From Octopus sinensis (lineage: Eukaryota), in the NCBI RefSeq assembly GCF_006345805.1, contig NC_043013.1, forward strand, positions 17,794,001 through 17,858,000: DNA of 64,000 nt, in the 5' to 3' direction. Under the pieces are notes generated by a model that ran no database searches, was not told where the DNA came from, and was given only the letters and a program-made list of their open reading frames with translations. This document shows positions 22,046 to 54,884 of this stretch, piece after piece; the stretch's first letter is position 1; each line of letters begins with the position of its first letter. The translations under genes were made by a program, and so were the position numbers.

Positions 22046-22341
22046 CAGATGAGGCCTATGGTTATATATATAAGTAACCTATTTCTAAATGCCTACAACC
22101 TCAATATATTGACAACTATACGCAATAAAAATTAAAATAACTACTTTTAACTATAGGCTGAAAAAGCTGTAAGAAGTGATTTTAATGATTTTAAAGATGA
22201 GGCCTATGGTTATATATATAAGTAACCTATTTCTAAATGCCTACAACCTCAATATATTGACAACTATACGCAATAAAATTAAAATAACTACTTTTAACTA
22301 TAGGCTGAAACAGCTGTAAGAAGTGATTTTAATGATTTTAA
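22046..22341 (+). ncRNA. Two tandem ~148-bp units, each a degenerate minimal hammerhead with a long stem II
   Basis: CAGATGA/AAGATGA - GGCCTATGGTT...AACTATAGGCT (11 bp) - GAAA - (A/C)AGCTG - TA; stem I partner missing. Confidence 0.6.
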
Positions 22342-22621
22342 TAATTTATATGATTTTTATAATTTGTATTCTTATCTTATATGTATTGAATTATAAGATA
22401 TATATGTATAATATTGAGCTTCTCATTTTGTTAAATGAATAAATAATAAATAATCCAATATTCTAATATCTGCAAGTTGATGAACAAACTAAATTTGTTT
22501 CTCTTCTTCTTATTTTCTATTTGTATATATATATATATATATATATATATATATATATATATATATATAATACACACACATATACATATATATATATTAT
22601 ATATATACACATACATATAAC

Positions 22622-22730
22622 GGGGTACTGAAAAAGACCTGGCTTTGGGTAAAAGAAAATATATGATGATCAGTTAATTATGATTTTATTCAACTTATTC
22701 CCCTGTCAGATTCACACACTTATTGCAGCA
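22622..22730. mobile_element. Terminal fragment of a mariner-derived MITE
   Basis: GGGGTACTGAAAAAGACCTGGCTTTGGG matches the end of the 36037-36254 element. Confidence 0.6.
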
Positions 22731-22980
22731 ACCCACTACGAAGTTTGCCATCACTCCTCCCTTCTTTATTCATCTATCACTCCTTCCTTTCTCATTCATA
22801 TGTTGTGTCCATGATGGTGCTGCTGCTGCTGTGTATCTGAACATCTTGGACTGCATCCGGAACCCTGCTTCCCACCCACAATGGGTTGGCATTCAACAAC
22901 TTACTCCAAAACCTGGCCCAAGGATATGCTGTGCTTTCTCTTTGCCTTTTCTACTGGTATCATGGTGATCTCTGTTTCTT

Positions 22981-23350
22981 GCGCAGGAGTGGCTGTGTGG
23001 TAAGTAGCTTGCTAACCAACCACATGGTTCCGGGTTCAGTCCCACTGCGTGGCATCTTGGGCAAGTGTCTTCTGCTATAGCCCCGGGCCGACCAATGCCT
23101 TGTGAGTGGATTTGGTAGACGGAAACTGAAAGAAGCCCGTCGTATATATGTGTGTGTTTGTGTGTCTGTGTTTGTCCCCCTAGCATTGCTGGTGTGTTTA
23201 CGTCCCCGTCACTTAGCGGTTCGGCAAAAGAGACCGATAGAATAAGTACTGGGCTTACAAAGAATAAGTCCCAGGGTCGATTTGCTCGACTAAAGGCGGT
23301 GCTCCAGCATGGCCGCAGTCAAATGACTGAAACAAGTAAAAGAGAGTAAA
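22981..23350 (+). mobile_element. Full-length tRNA-derived SINE (family B)
   Basis: A-box TGGCTGTGTGG, B-box GGTTCAGTCCC, internal (TG) tract, tail GAAACAAGTAAAAGAG; many copies in window. Confidence 0.9.
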
Positions 23351-25439
23351 AGAGAAAGAGAGATTGTCTTGTGTCACCCACTATCAACTCAATCATTGCT
23401 TCCCCTCCTTTTATCACCCACTTTGCGTCTATCTCACCATACACTGCACTAACTGTCCAGGCCAACATGTGTTGGAAGGTGTGGACATGCCTGTACAGTA
23501 TATATCATCATGTATTTATATATTTTATATCGTAACTGGTAATTAATAGCATTGTAGGTTATAGGTTTCCAGCAGATCTATTCTGCAAGTCTTTGGCTGG
23601 TTTCTTTAATCTTCAGCAATTCTCTCAGCTCATTTGTGCCCTACATTAATGCTGTATAACTTAGGGATAATAATACTTGACTAATTTATTTTCGGCCTCC
23701 ACAGATTGTTTCTTTTTAATACTTGCTCATCTCTCACTATCCACATCTCGCTGTCTCACTGTCAACATTTCCTTGTCCTTTCTGATTGTTTATTTCTCAC
23801 CATCCCTATCTGATAGTCCATCCCTCACTGCTCATCTCTAACTGTCCATCTGTCCCTACTCATCTCTGTCTATTCATCTCTCATTGTCCATCTCTCACCG
23901 TCCCTATCTGGCTGTCAATCGCTCCCTACTCGTGTTTCATTGTCCCTATTTCACTGTCCATACTATGATCTGTGACATTGAGATTGAAAAAGAGGGTGTT
24001 TAGATGCTGCAAGCACCGCCTCAATTAACTCAAAGGTAGAGTGACATCCCTCTTGCATACCTCTCCACTTTCATCAATGATTTCACTGATTGTGAGGTAT
24101 ATTTGTGTTCCTTAATTGGAAAATCTAACAATCAAAAGCATAAACTATATTCTAGGAAAATGCAATAATCAATGACGATGTGTTTTTCCATCTTACATTT
24201 GACATGACATTCAGGATTGTTATGTGGAAAGAAAGGATAGATGGTGAGGTGGGACAGAGTGGTGGTGTAAGGTGAGATGAAACAATGTGGACAAGTTTTA
24301 CCCTTTTTAAGAACAGAATTTCAAAAACTCCACACTACTGAATGCTTAACATTGTATTGTGGTGCCTCACCCTGACAGAGACAAACATATCATGAAATAC
24401 ATGACAGCATTACTTATGCTTGCTGATTGGAGAGCAAAACGAAGGGGGGAAAAAAACCCTGGAAGGCGATCAAGCATGACAGTTTATATCATGTGAAGAG
24501 AACATTAGTAGTGTGAGTGCACCACCCAGATCATGTAGGATGGGTTTAAATAATATGCATGTCATTTGACGAGTGCAGGGATTCACTGATGGATTCTGTT
24601 ACACGAGAAATATTGTCTGGTGTCAGATCAGTCCTGTTTGAGCTGATATTACAATTAAAGGTATTCTAATGAGAACTATCCTATTTATTGGGTAATGAAC
24701 ACAGGTATGATTCACTACAAACTCCACCTATACACTGAATATAATGGCGCCAGTATGGGGACAACTACCAAGGCAACCTAGAATCTCAGAGATATTGGAT
24801 TACTCTGCCAAGCCAAATAATAATAATAATAATAATAATAATAATAATAATAATAATAATCCTTTCTATTGTAGGTACAAAGCCTGAAATTTGTGGGGAG
24901 AGGGTAAGTCAATCACATCGGCCCCAATGTTTCACTGGTGCTTAACTTATTGACCCCAAAAGGATGAAAGGCAAAGTCAACTTCAGTGAAATTTGAAATC
25001 AGAACATAAAGATGGACAAAAAGCTGCTAAGCACGATAATGGCTCTACCAGCTCCTCCATCTTAAATAATAATAATAATAATAATAATAATAATAATTCT
25101 TTCTAATTTTGGCACAAGGTCATAAATTTTAATGGGAGGGGTTAGTTGATTACATTGACCCCAATCCTTGACTTGGTTGTGACATGATTTGAATTCTAAG
25201 TACAAAGAGCTGGGGTTATAACCCAATCCTTGACTGGTTGTGACATGATTTGAATTCTAAGTACAAAGAGCTGGTTATACCCCCCCCGCCCCCCCAAAAA
25301 ACCATGAGGCATTTCATTAAACACTAACAATTCTACCAAATATCATAATAATAATCCTTTCTAGTTCTGGCATAAGGCTTAGCAATTTTGAGAGGTGGGA
25401 TCAAACCTATTACCTCAACTGTAGTACTTAACAGTGACA

Positions 25440-52812: not shown

Positions 52813-53340
52813 TGTATGAATCTGCTTTGAGTAGATAAAGTGTTGCACAACATTCAGTCCTTTTCAGTGCAGTCAGCTATAAAACCAGAGGCATAGCAGA
52901 GGCTGAAGTGACCAGTAACTAACTGTACATCATTTCTTTTGTACAAGTTCACCTTGTCTTAGAAGGAAGTTCTAACAAGAACAAGGGGTCCTTCACTCAC
53001 AGTTGTTCACATGCTAGTTGATCCATAGCTGGGACCTTAACAGATGCTACTACTCTGGATAAGAGTAGACCTGGGAACAACAGTGACTAAGAGTTAGTTC
53101 CACATTCCTCAAAACTCCCAGAACTCCTATACCAGGGTCCCACTACAGGATGCAGATTAAAGTTATAAGAAGGACTTGGACACACACACACACACACAAA
53201 CATGCACATGTTCTATACACACACACATGCATATAAACAGATGATTTGGGTTTTCTTTTGCTATTATTATCAGAAACCATTATATTTCACTTTATGTACT
53301 GAGTGGCGACTCTATTCATTTGTATTAACAAAGCTATATA

Positions 53341-54257
53341 CAGGATGTTCATAAAGTTTCTTTACAATTTTAAAATTTTATTACAAAAGCAATTGACAAA
53401 ATATCTTAACCAGATTTGTTTTATTGTAATAATTGTTTATTAAAGTTTTTTTAATTGTTATTTAATAGACCTCAATATGGGTACCGTTAGTTGCGCGAAG
53501 CACATCAAGACGGCACTCGATTTCTTGCCATGTTCGCTGTAGGATAGCCTCATCAATGGTGGCAATGGCATTACGAATTCTTTGCTTCAAGTCAGCAATG
53601 TCCCGTATCTTTGTTTGATATAGATATCTTTTACATAACCCCATAAAAAGAAGTCCAAGGGAGTGATATCTGGTGAACGCAGTGGCCATGGAATTGACCC
53701 ATCCCTTCCAATCCATCGGTCTGGAAATGTTTGATTGAGGAACTGATGAACATACCGTCCCCAATGTGGTGGTGCACCATCTTGCTGGAGAATGATGGTT
53801 GGTTGTAAATCAATCAGTTGTGGTGCCACATATTCGGTCAGAAGGTCGAGGTAAACATCTGCAGTAATTGTGCCTCGTTGAAGAAAAATGAACCAATTAT
53901 TTGATTGCACATGATTCCATACCACACATTCACTCTTGGACTATCCCGTTGAAGCAACCTAGTCACATGGAGGTGTTCTGATCCCCAGTTTCTCAAATTG
54001 TGTCTGTTTAATTTCCCTGAAACATGAAAGTCGCCTCGTCACTAAAACAAACTCACTTGAGGAATACTTCATCCTCATTTTATAGGGTTCAGTGAATCAG
54101 TTCCATTCCATCAACAGAGTATCTGAAACACAAAAATTAAATATCAATGAAAACTTTAATAAACAATTATTAAAATAAAATAAATCTGGTTAAAATATCT
54201 CATCAACTGCCTTTGTAATAATTTTTTTAAATTGTAAAGAGACTTTATGGACACCTG
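53341..54257 (-). mobile_element. rosa-type (DD41D) Tc1/mariner transposon, internally deleted, both long TIRs intact
   Basis: QQDGAPPHW...WPLRSPDITPLDFFLWG with 41-residue D-D spacing; ~115-bp TIRs starting CAGG(A)TGT(T/C)CATAAAG; TA on both sides. Confidence 0.9.
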
Positions 54258-54602
54258 TATATATATATATATATATATATATATATATATATATTTATAT
54301 ATATATATATATATATATATATAGTATGTGTGGTGTATATACTATATATATATATATATACAAGATAAGAAAATGGAGAAATACATCTAAATCAAATATC
54401 AATTACCAGATAATACTCAATCACATACTTTATTAAACCACCACATAAGAGACTATAGGGTTAAATATAAAATGCAGAACAAATCAGTGTACATAAAGGA
54501 ATGTACATAAAAAATTGTACATAAACGAGTAATGTTGTATAATAAGTAGAATATATATAAAAGAGAATATAAATATAAGTAAATATAAATATAAGTATAG
54601 AT

Positions 54603-54735
54603 TACATCTTACAGCTGTTTCGGCCATGTAGATAAGTATGTCTCATTTTACCAATATTAGCCCTTTATGGTTGGTCAATATATAGATATAAATGAGACAT
54701 TTACAAAAAATCATAAGGCCTCTTCGGAGGGGTAT
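54603..54735 (-). ncRNA. Hammerhead with ~99-nt stem II and U4C core
   Basis: CCCCT CCGAAGA GGCC...ATGTCTCATTT..AAATGAGACAT...GGCC GAAA CAGCTG TA^AGATGTA; same family as 22046-22341. Confidence 0.7.
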
Positions 54736-54826
54736 ATATGTAGACTGATTTATATTACATAATCTACTAGTATTTGCTCCTTCCATGGGTATAAGTAAGT
54801 ATCTCATTTATTTCTTTTACCACATG

Positions 54827-54884
54827 TATCACTGACGAAGAGAGGGCTCTTAGTAGCTAACTCTGAAATCGGTCCGATATGGTA
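54827..54884 (+). ncRNA. Minimal type I hammerhead ribozyme
   Basis: TATCA CTGACGA AGAG...CTCT GAAA TCGG-T-CCGA TA^TGGTA; AUA triplet; predicted cut after 54879. Confidence 0.8.

Follow-up and report, generated by a model that had tools for sequence, protein, structure and literature searches.

Penelope-like elements (PLEs) carry minimal type I hammerhead ribozymes. There are thousands of these in many metazoan genomes, where several divergent families coexist (Cervera & de la Pena 2014, PMC4209133). Most of them stand alone, and some form opposite-strand pairs that are 100-700 bp apart. They probably act as dimers, and they cleave poorly in vitro (PMC4209133). Here, we examine hammerhead-like motifs in a 64,000-nt stretch of the genome of Octopus sinensis (contig NC_043013.1, positions 17,794,001 to 17,858,000). 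We call this stretch the window, and coordinates count from its first letter. From the comparison with cnidarian elements that is described below, we think it likely that the octopus motifs are fossils: 5'-truncated fragments from the 3' ends of PLEs, with minimal dimer-type hammerheads that are mostly inactive.

Two described systems are particularly relevant. First, the elements in the Hydra clade of PLEs are short and are found in Cnidaria and Mollusca. They have a C-terminal endonuclease without CCHH, hammerheads are universal among them, and nearly all of their families are inserted in (TA)n (Craig et al. 2021, PMC8557442). (Targeting of (TA)n by PLE clades was reported in 2021 in the same study.) Second, the metazoan non-LTR (non-long-terminal-repeat) retrozymes are tandem repeats of type I hammerheads, with units of 150-450 bp, that are transcribed, self-cleave, and circularise (PMC7229834). 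A 2026 preprint (Li et al.) proposes that animal retrozymes derive from PLEs and are non-autonomous. In our literature search, we found no paper on hammerheads in octopus, and the genomes covered by the literature that we found included no octopods.

An earlier note on the window, made from its sequence alone, had listed 13 hammerhead motifs. We read the window at all 13 coordinates, one by one. There is hammerhead-like sequence at every one of them, but the quality is very unequal: five sites are intact and eight are degenerate. The conserved core (C3-U4-G5-A6-N7-G8-A9, then G12-A13-A14, then A15.1-U16.1 and H17) is present at 29974(-), 46822(-), 54827(+), 28291(-), and 51029(-). All five have intact CUGANGA, GAAA, and UH boxes, and five is also the number of intact cores that had been claimed. 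The remaining eight sites, which have one or two core changes or lack the 5' box, are decayed or truncated relatives. The motifs are concentrated in the 22-55 kb part of the window.

We then searched the window with a strict descriptor for type I hammerheads: CUGANGA, a helix II of at least 2 bp (with a mismatch allowed at 10.1/11.1), GAAA, a palindromic helix III of at least 3 bp, UH, and a helix I of at least 4 bp. Three sites pass: 30016-29979(-), 46893-46822(-), and 54827-54884(+). In each of these, three helices surround the core and helix I is open. The three have no sequence relationship to each other and are therefore independent events. The other two intact-core sites fail because helix I has just 3 bp (28291) or because helix II is irregular (51029); we consider them plausible, weaker motifs.

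Could these be chance matches in AT-rich, repeat-rich sequence? The earlier note had proposed a comparison to dinucleotide-shuffled sequence, and the strict motifs stand well above it. There were 0.00 matches per shuffle to the strict descriptor (60 shuffles) and 0.06 to a version with a looser helix III (100 shuffles), versus three in the window. Because shuffling destroys native palindromes, we added a control with decoy cores: we made 720 descriptors in which the letters of both conserved boxes were permuted, and we ran them on the real sequence of the window. The decoys averaged 0.036 matches, and only one other decoy reached three. As a positive control, the strict descriptor recovers 108 of 138 cnidarian PLE hammerheads (described below) in 531 kb of sequence, with two unrelated matches there. 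If two core mismatches are allowed, then 12 sites in the window match, versus 3.5 +/- 2.1 in shuffles. That number of shuffled sites favors chance for some of the motifs, as does the lack of anything at Rfam's gathering thresholds (see below). Single weak sites are indistinguishable from chance on structure alone, and this applies to 28291, 42806, and 22046/22194. Against chance, besides the shuffles and the decoys, are the enrichment of the 3' box of the family B relics and the match of family A to a large family of PLE hammerheads (both described below). For the whole set, chance is refuted and is scarcely credible as an explanation. Individually, 28291 and 42806 could still be chance matches.

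As the earlier note had claimed, several families are involved: we distinguished families A through F, which include a number of relics that we call B-type. The family A solo copy is an 89-bp insert at 29946-30034(-), between (TA)4 and (TA)10, with the hammerhead at 30022-29973. It has helix I CAAAAACUGU/ACAGAUUUUG, core CUGAUGA, helix II (A)CG-GCAA-CG(A), GAAA, and helix III ACUCAGAGU. Cleavage is predicted after GUA at 29983, which leaves a tail of ~37 nt beyond the cleavage site. Family C is similarly a solo insert, of 108 bp (46797-46904(-)), between (TA)10 and (AT)25, with the hammerhead at 46893-46822. Its helix I is AAUUCAU/AUGGAUU, its core is CUGACGA, its helix II is AACG/CGUU with a long distal part, and GAAA is followed by helix III ACGGCCGU, which is a perfect palindrome without a loop. 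The predicted cleavage triplet is GUA and the 3' tail is 32 nt.

The other three intact-core families are more varied. Family D is a 238-bp insert (50941-51178(-)) between (AT)13 and (TA)12, with the hammerhead at 51095-51035. It has helix I GGGGU/ACCCC, core CUGAAGA, GAAA, helix III ACCCAGGGU, and a predicted GUA cleavage triplet. Its helix II consists of a U-A pair, a 4x4 internal loop, and then a 7-bp stem, which is why it fails the strict descriptor. Family E (54827-54884(+)) has helix I UAUCA/UGGUA, core CUGACGA, helix II AGAG/CUCU, GAAA, and helix III AUCGG-U-CCGAU, with AUA as the predicted cleavage triplet. This copy lacks clear (TA)n borders and is head-to-head with the relic at 54603(-), which is ~200 bp away. 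Family F is a hammerhead-like motif at 28298-28372(-), with core CUGAAGA, G10.1-C11.1, GAAA, helix III ACACGUGU (a perfect palindrome), a predicted GUA cleavage triplet, and the 3-bp helix I mentioned above. It is the weakest of the intact-core sites.

The claim that these are minimal type I hammerheads is supported, and helix III is palindromic in every family. The palindrome is perfect in ACGGCCGU, ACACGUGU, and ACAGCUGU (the last is from family B), and it has one central nucleotide in ACUCNGAGU, ACCCAGGGU, and AUCGGUCCGAU. With no loop or a 1-nt loop, helix III cannot close as a hairpin, but pairing between two copies is possible. When we folded families A, C, D, E, and F as monomers and as homodimers, an intermolecular helix III formed in the minimum-free-energy homodimers of just A and D, which supports a double hammerhead for these two families.

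In a scan of the whole window with Rfam, in both gathering and E-value modes, we found no hammerhead, and the list was dominated by microRNA-shaped matches on TA/TG microsatellites. In narrow scans with Hammerhead_1 (RF00163, whose gathering score is 34 bits), 46823-46892(-) scored 22.0 bits (E = 0.0017) in an alignment to the full-length model that takes in the loop-less helix III. There was a weak match at 28295-28375(-) (15.2 bits, E = 0.28), and the three other intact-core sites (29974, 54827, and 51029) had no match. As a yardstick, a bona fide PLE hammerhead that is linked to an open reading frame (ORF) scored just 19.5 bits. This is less than 46823-46892(-) scored and is below the gathering score. 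Because a true PLE hammerhead fails, the gathering threshold is uninformative for this minimal class.

The earlier note had also associated the motifs with (TA)n, and this association stands for three intact copies: 29974, 46822, and 51029 have (TA)n on either side, within at most 100 nt. The window is AT-rich, with ~165 (TA)n runs of at least four units (119 of them within 22-55 kb). The probability that a random 60-bp span has (TA) of at least four units within 100 nt on both sides is 0.042 per site. The borders expected of insertion in (TA)n, which is a hallmark of the Hydra, Neptune, and Naiad PLEs, are seen for 29946-30034, 46797-46904, and 50941-51178. A family B pair at 30921-31196 (see below) has (TA)n on one side and TATATA on the other. 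For 54827 and 28291, (TA)n borders could not be shown.

Two of the degenerate loci are head-to-head pairs. The family A pair (45133-45296) is a palindrome whose arms are 83% identical, with the 3' ends facing outward. The (-) copy (45219-45171) belongs to family A, and its core has decayed to CCAACGA. In the (+) copy (45226-45260), the 5' truncation falls inside the core, and the apparent core at 45217(+) is an artefact of the junction. (A SINE-like repeat, or short-interspersed-element-like repeat, at 45289-45398 adjoins the right arm.) The family B pair (30921-31196) is also a palindrome with outward-facing 3' ends, and its arms are 79% identical. Its cores are CCGAUGA in the (-) copy (31032-30984) and CCGAUUA in the (+) copy (31065-31123), its helix III is ACAGCUGU/ACAUCUGU, and it is bordered by (TA)21 at the right end and TGTGTATATA at the left end. 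In both palindromes, the (-) copy lies to the left of the (+) copy, and the 5' end points are not the same as in the solo family A copy. Three different 5' ends are found among the family A copies in the window. So, another hallmark of PLEs is present, namely an inverted 5'-truncated partner, with a variable 5' end and a constant 3' end, although the octopus sample is very small.

These palindromes bear on another explanation, which is that the motifs are fortuitous hammerhead-like words within miniature inverted-repeat transposable elements (MITEs) of TA-targeting DNA transposons, or within foldback elements. Tc1/mariner elements insert at TA. The window does contain mariner and pogo relics as well as perfect MITE-like hairpins, and two of our sites are palindromic. 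But the solo inserts of A, C, and E lack terminal inverted repeats, and the decoy cores show that the hammerhead boxes themselves are enriched, beyond any enrichment of stems or palindromes. Also, the same kind of palindromic pair is common among the copies of one ORF-linked PLE hammerhead (described below). We consider this explanation barely plausible.

The other degenerate sites are B-type relics. The 3' box GAAACAGCTGTAAGA is present six times in the window with at most two mismatches, versus 0.14 times expected, so these are related relics and not chance. The 3' boxes of 22046, 22194, and 42806 are the same as in the pair at 30921-31196. Beyond the boxes, the B-type sites share no sequence. 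At 54603-54625(-), we found just the 3' half (GGCC-GAAAC-AGCUG-UA-AGAUGUA), and the CUGANGA box is absent. The relic at 42812-42919(+) has the core UUGAUGA and GAAACGGCUGUA-GGAC, with ~80 nt separating the boxes; its helices I and II are poor. Sites 22046 and 22194 lie in a tandem repeat (22047-22341(+); 2.0 units of 148 bp that are 98% identical), with one relic per unit. Their cores are CAGAUGA and AAGAUGA, helix II (GGCCUAU/AUAGGCU) surrounds ~100 nt, and the 3' part is GAAA(A/C)AGCUGUA-AGAAG. The 148-bp unit was duplicated when its core was already dead.

We also noticed that the B-type relics of the window (30984-31032, 31065-31123, 22045-22176, 22193-22323, and 42812-42919) retain GAUGA and GAAAC-NGCUG-UA. 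Their cores vary from CUGAUGA at positions 3-4 alone (CC, CC, CA, AA, and UU). Another O. sinensis locus (L127, 1490-1606) has a B-type relic with the canonical CU, and hence an intact CUGAUGA core, with ~95 nt between the two boxes. The differences at positions 3-4, in three independent B-type lineages, could reflect chance decay or a tolerated variant.

The tandem repeat raises the question of whether the motifs derive from retrozymes. It has one hammerhead-like motif in each unit, and 148 bp is at the lower edge of the size range for retrozymes (PMC7229834). More broadly, both the window and the non-LTR retrozymes (PMC7229834; Li et al. 2026) have type I hammerheads in AT-rich non-coding repeats, and the retrozymes' proposed origin is from the pseudo-LTRs (pLTRs) of PLEs. 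But retrozymes are multi-copy arrays of canonical hammerheads with loop-loop contacts, and they give rise to circular RNAs. Here, the only array has two units whose cores are mutated at C3/U4, and every intact motif is solo and minimal. Furthermore, helix I is open and has no loop 1, so the contacts between loop 1 and loop 2 of canonical retrozyme hammerheads could not form, and the ~100 nt of the unit lie inside helix II instead of between ribozymes. A retrozyme origin therefore seems very unlikely.

To look for relatives of family A, we searched metagenome contigs for its pattern CTGATGA-N8-12-GAAACTCNGAGTAACAG; by our estimate, well under one match was expected by chance. We found at least 120 contigs with 138 copies of a single hammerhead family, ACUGU-CUGAUGA-GUGC-GURA-GCAC-GAAACUCGGAGUA-ACAG, which includes G10.1-C11.1. 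Octopus family A and this family have helix I, helix III, and the cleavage site in common. Helix II differs: it is (A)CG-GCAA-CG(A) or ACG-GGAG-CGU in the octopus and GUGC-GURA-GCAC in the other family. In both cases it is a short capped hairpin.

These contigs appear to be from cnidarian PLEs. Eleven of them have similarity to a 714-amino-acid ORF with the reverse transcriptase (RT) motifs FDIESFYPSI and YRDDGL and with a C-terminal endonuclease motif (..VY..YIG..) without CCHH. This ORF has more than 2,500 homologues, and the named clusters are from the jellyfish Sanderia and the coral Acropora, which are both cnidarians. The ORF fits the RT and GIY-YIG endonuclease of a Penelope element similar to the Hydra clade, as judged from its motifs. 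(Searches of the ORF against Pfam and against the sequences in PDB gave no match.) In seven contigs, the C-terminus of the ORF, an untranslated region of ~190 nt, the hammerhead, and a 30-nt tail align together, followed by unrelated flanks. In other words, the cnidarian hammerhead lies ~190 nt past the stop codon and ~30-35 nt before the 3' end of the element. Among the 138 copies, 43 are in head-to-head pairs, with the junction a few tens of nt 5' of the hammerhead, and 44 have other 5' flanks (truncated or variant). The tail runs directly into (TA) of at least three units in 19 of 130 copies.

We made some further observations about the cnidarian contigs. In 39 of 130 copies (within L003-L122; for example L016 at 428-470, L105, and L026), the 30-nt tail is followed by the identical sequence ATACTCAGCTCTACACTATATGTGTATTGAGC, probably because the next unit of a tandem (pseudo-LTR) arrangement starts there with its 5' end. 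In one contig (L050, 1-520), two hammerheads that differ from each other lie between (TA)n runs, upstream of a single PLE ORF. One of these hammerheads has the core CUGAGGA and helix III ACAUGU; the other is a variant of the family with helix II UCGC/GCGU replacing GUGC/GCAC, which is a compensatory change. In the same contig, a second, 5'-truncated copy of the ORF starts 58 nt after the first stop codon. We also scanned viral contigs: the family C pattern had no matches, and the B pattern had three chance matches in phage DNA.

Overall, the motifs in the window resemble PLE hammerheads in many ways. They are type I, with a short, open helix I and a very short palindromic helix III that implies action as a dimer. 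They form divergent families, are mostly solo with some opposite-strand pairs, vary in the core in some copies, and are missed at standard Rfam thresholds. With the Hydra clade, which is reported from Cnidaria and Mollusca, they have in common (TA)n insertion sites, short elements whose hammerhead is near the 3' end, and complex insertions, both tandem and inverted. Family A appears to most resemble the Hydra clade, given that its helix I, helix III, and cleavage triplet are also those of a cnidarian family with an ORF that fits that clade. The other families could not be placed. Several of these traits were not imposed by our search, namely the palindromic helix III of every family, the flanking of three intact copies by (TA)n on either side, the tails of 32-37 nt in families A and C, and the two outward-facing head-to-head pairs.

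Several results weigh against a PLE origin. First, the link to PLEs is by analogy to cnidarian elements. The earlier note had reported no RT or GIY-YIG ORF in the window, and we agree. Among the 275 stop-to-stop ORFs of at least 60 amino acids that passed a low-complexity filter, Pfam found no GIY-YIG domain, and the sole RT belongs to a long interspersed element (LINE). Also, tblastn of ~120 PLE proteins against the window found nothing at E <= 0.01. Second, families A, C, B, and D have A opposite A at 10.1/11.1, whereas minimal hammerheads from PLEs usually have a conserved G10.1-C11.1 (PMC4209133) as well as one bulged nucleotide. In the window, only 28291 has G10.1-C11.1, family E has A-U, and we did not see the expected combination of an extra nucleotide after A9 with G10.1-C11.1. 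Third, no relatives were found for families C, D, E, and F, each of which has one copy, and no site in the window attains Rfam's gathering score. Fourth, the features that family A shares with the cnidarian family (helix I, helix III, and the cleavage site) are the search pattern itself, so the independent evidence is from abundance and context, and homology is unproven. Finally, the identification of RT and GIY-YIG in the cnidarian ORF relies on our reading of the motifs and on the precomputed Pfam GIY-YIG tag of one homologue that is 49% identical. When recomputed, this tag covers residues 504-529 of that homologue's 1086 amino acids and may fall outside of the aligned region.

Remnants of a PLE do exist in another octopus. 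A locus from O. bimaculoides (L001) contains RT remnants similar to the Hydra clade, at 12417-12860 and 6890-7054 (tblastn E = 5e-12, 44% identity over 77 amino acids). We looked for a hammerhead near these remnants and detected none. RT remnants of the clade were found in octopus only at this locus, and the hammerhead copies themselves lack ORFs. A caveat is that the Neptune and Naiad PLEs also target (TA)n.

If the motifs are PLE fragments, then we infer the following about dimeric cleavage, insertion, and the origin of the octopus copies. In a mechanism drawn from established PLE biology, the GIY-YIG endonuclease of the element would nick (TA)n, and reverse transcription would be primed at the nick, from the 3' end of the RNA. 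RT would often stop early and leave many copies with only the hammerhead and the tail, as the inserts of 89 and 108 bp may be; a hammerhead that lies 30-100 nt from the 3' end of the element would yield inserts this short. Template switching could then add a second, inverted, 5'-truncated copy, giving a head-to-head pair. Such pairs are explained by this scheme because PLEs tend to add an inverted 5'-truncated copy (PMC8557442). The ribozyme would be active only when two copies, such as those in a tandem PLE transcript, pair as a double hammerhead; it would then cut after GUA or AUA and thereby define the ends of the RNA. The three to five copies with intact boxes in the window are solo or face an antisense partner, and they are probably inert.

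The earlier note had described the motifs as non-autonomous derivatives of PLEs or of retrozymes. The PLE part has indirect support, via the ORF-linked cnidarian relatives of family A. The retrozyme part is not, as the sole tandem array has dead cores and the intact motifs are solo. "Non-autonomous" is not needed, because the anatomy is just as well explained by autonomous PLEs that underwent ordinary 5' truncation. Still, we considered whether there might be dedicated ultra-short elements of ~90-110 bp, consisting of a hammerhead and a ~35-nt tail with their own 5' end, that are mobilised in trans into (TA)n by PLEs. The near-identical, compact layout of two unrelated families (A at 89 bp and C at 108 bp), with clean (TA)n borders, fits this idea, as does the derivation of animal retrozymes from PLEs as non-autonomous elements in the preprint of Li et al. 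(2026). However, with one full solo copy per family, the constancy of the 5' end cannot be judged; the cnidarian relatives have variable 5' ends; and the family A pair at 45133-45296 and the solo copy have different 5' truncation points. We consider such elements unlikely. We are similarly doubtful of the fuller version, in which the A and C inserts (89-108 bp) are a distinct ribozyme-bearing class with a defined 5' end, moved in trans by the TA-targeting PLE enzymes of cephalopods, and in which the A.A and C3/U4 variants are tolerated or selected instead of being signs of decay. Truncated PLE fragments remain our preferred explanation.

From the density in the window, the earlier note had extrapolated to one motif per 2.5 kb across the genome. 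This does not hold up. At four other octopus loci (82 kb from three species), we found no intact motifs, even if we allowed a helix I of at least 3 bp, and a single relic. One of these four loci nearly equals the window in its richness in (TA)n. When we compared the candidates to the other octopus loci with blastn, we found TA-repeat noise and no copies of the families.

The window contains many other repeats. There is a pogo/Tigger relic at ~37.6-39 kb (37600-39000) with DDE_1, CENP-B_N, and HTH_Tnp_Tc5 domains, and there are two mariner-like transposase fragments (5051-5626(-) and 53465-53940(-)). A LINE relic at 39867-41744 encodes an APE endonuclease and RT; the best relatives of its endonuclease ORF are from Octopus bimaculoides, O. 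sinensis, and O. vulgaris, at 72% identity. Interspersed repeats in the window match the four loci from the same three species at 80-83% mean identity. Together with the LINE, these repeats identify the window as octopod DNA. Two long, near-perfect hairpins (31545-31657, 113 nt; and 51216-51387, ~170 nt) resemble the plant microRNA models MIR7533, MIR7994, and MIR810 in shape only, with matches far below threshold; they are probably MITEs or foldback elements. The arms of the longer hairpin are inverted copies of a repeat that is also found at 231-292, 2297-2346, 17202-17265, and 50602-50661. The SINE-like repeat is ~110 bp long (AACTCGTTTCAGTCATTTGACTGCGGCCATGCTGGAGCACCGCC...), and its copies, at 45289-45398, 23244-23350, 58843-58939, 56042-56151, 52385-52491, 46228-46307, and 1472-1526, are 86-92% identical; ARAGORN found no tRNA-like part in the window.

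Other parts of the window are low in complexity or may be coding. A tandem-like array at 51480-51980, with a unit of ~50-70 bp and at least six copies, forms a repetitive open frame in several phases, and relatives of the unit are at 50783-50843, 2475-2521, 63144-63167, and 17091-17115. The region at 59700-61100 has long low-complexity tracts, of the AAT/ATT type or rich in CT/GA, which translate to poly-N, poly-S, poly-L, and poly-P frames. Finally, an open frame of 429 amino acids at 8831-10117(-), which is partly rich in Asn and Asp, had a single homologue in our protein search (P0013, from an ENA assembly; 48% identical). This frame may be an exon of a host gene.

The octopus motifs represent a known kind of element in a new host, and not a new kind. 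Because Penelope-type hammerheads have been well documented in other animals since 2014, we view the finding as real but ordinary. It raises no new question. What it adds is an octopod genome to the animals with Penelope-type minimal hammerheads, and a single locus that displays textbook insertion anatomy, with (TA)n targets, truncation anchored at the 3' end, and head-to-head pairs. It is also a reminder that minimal hammerheads are overlooked by Rfam's gathering thresholds and by ordinary repeat annotation.

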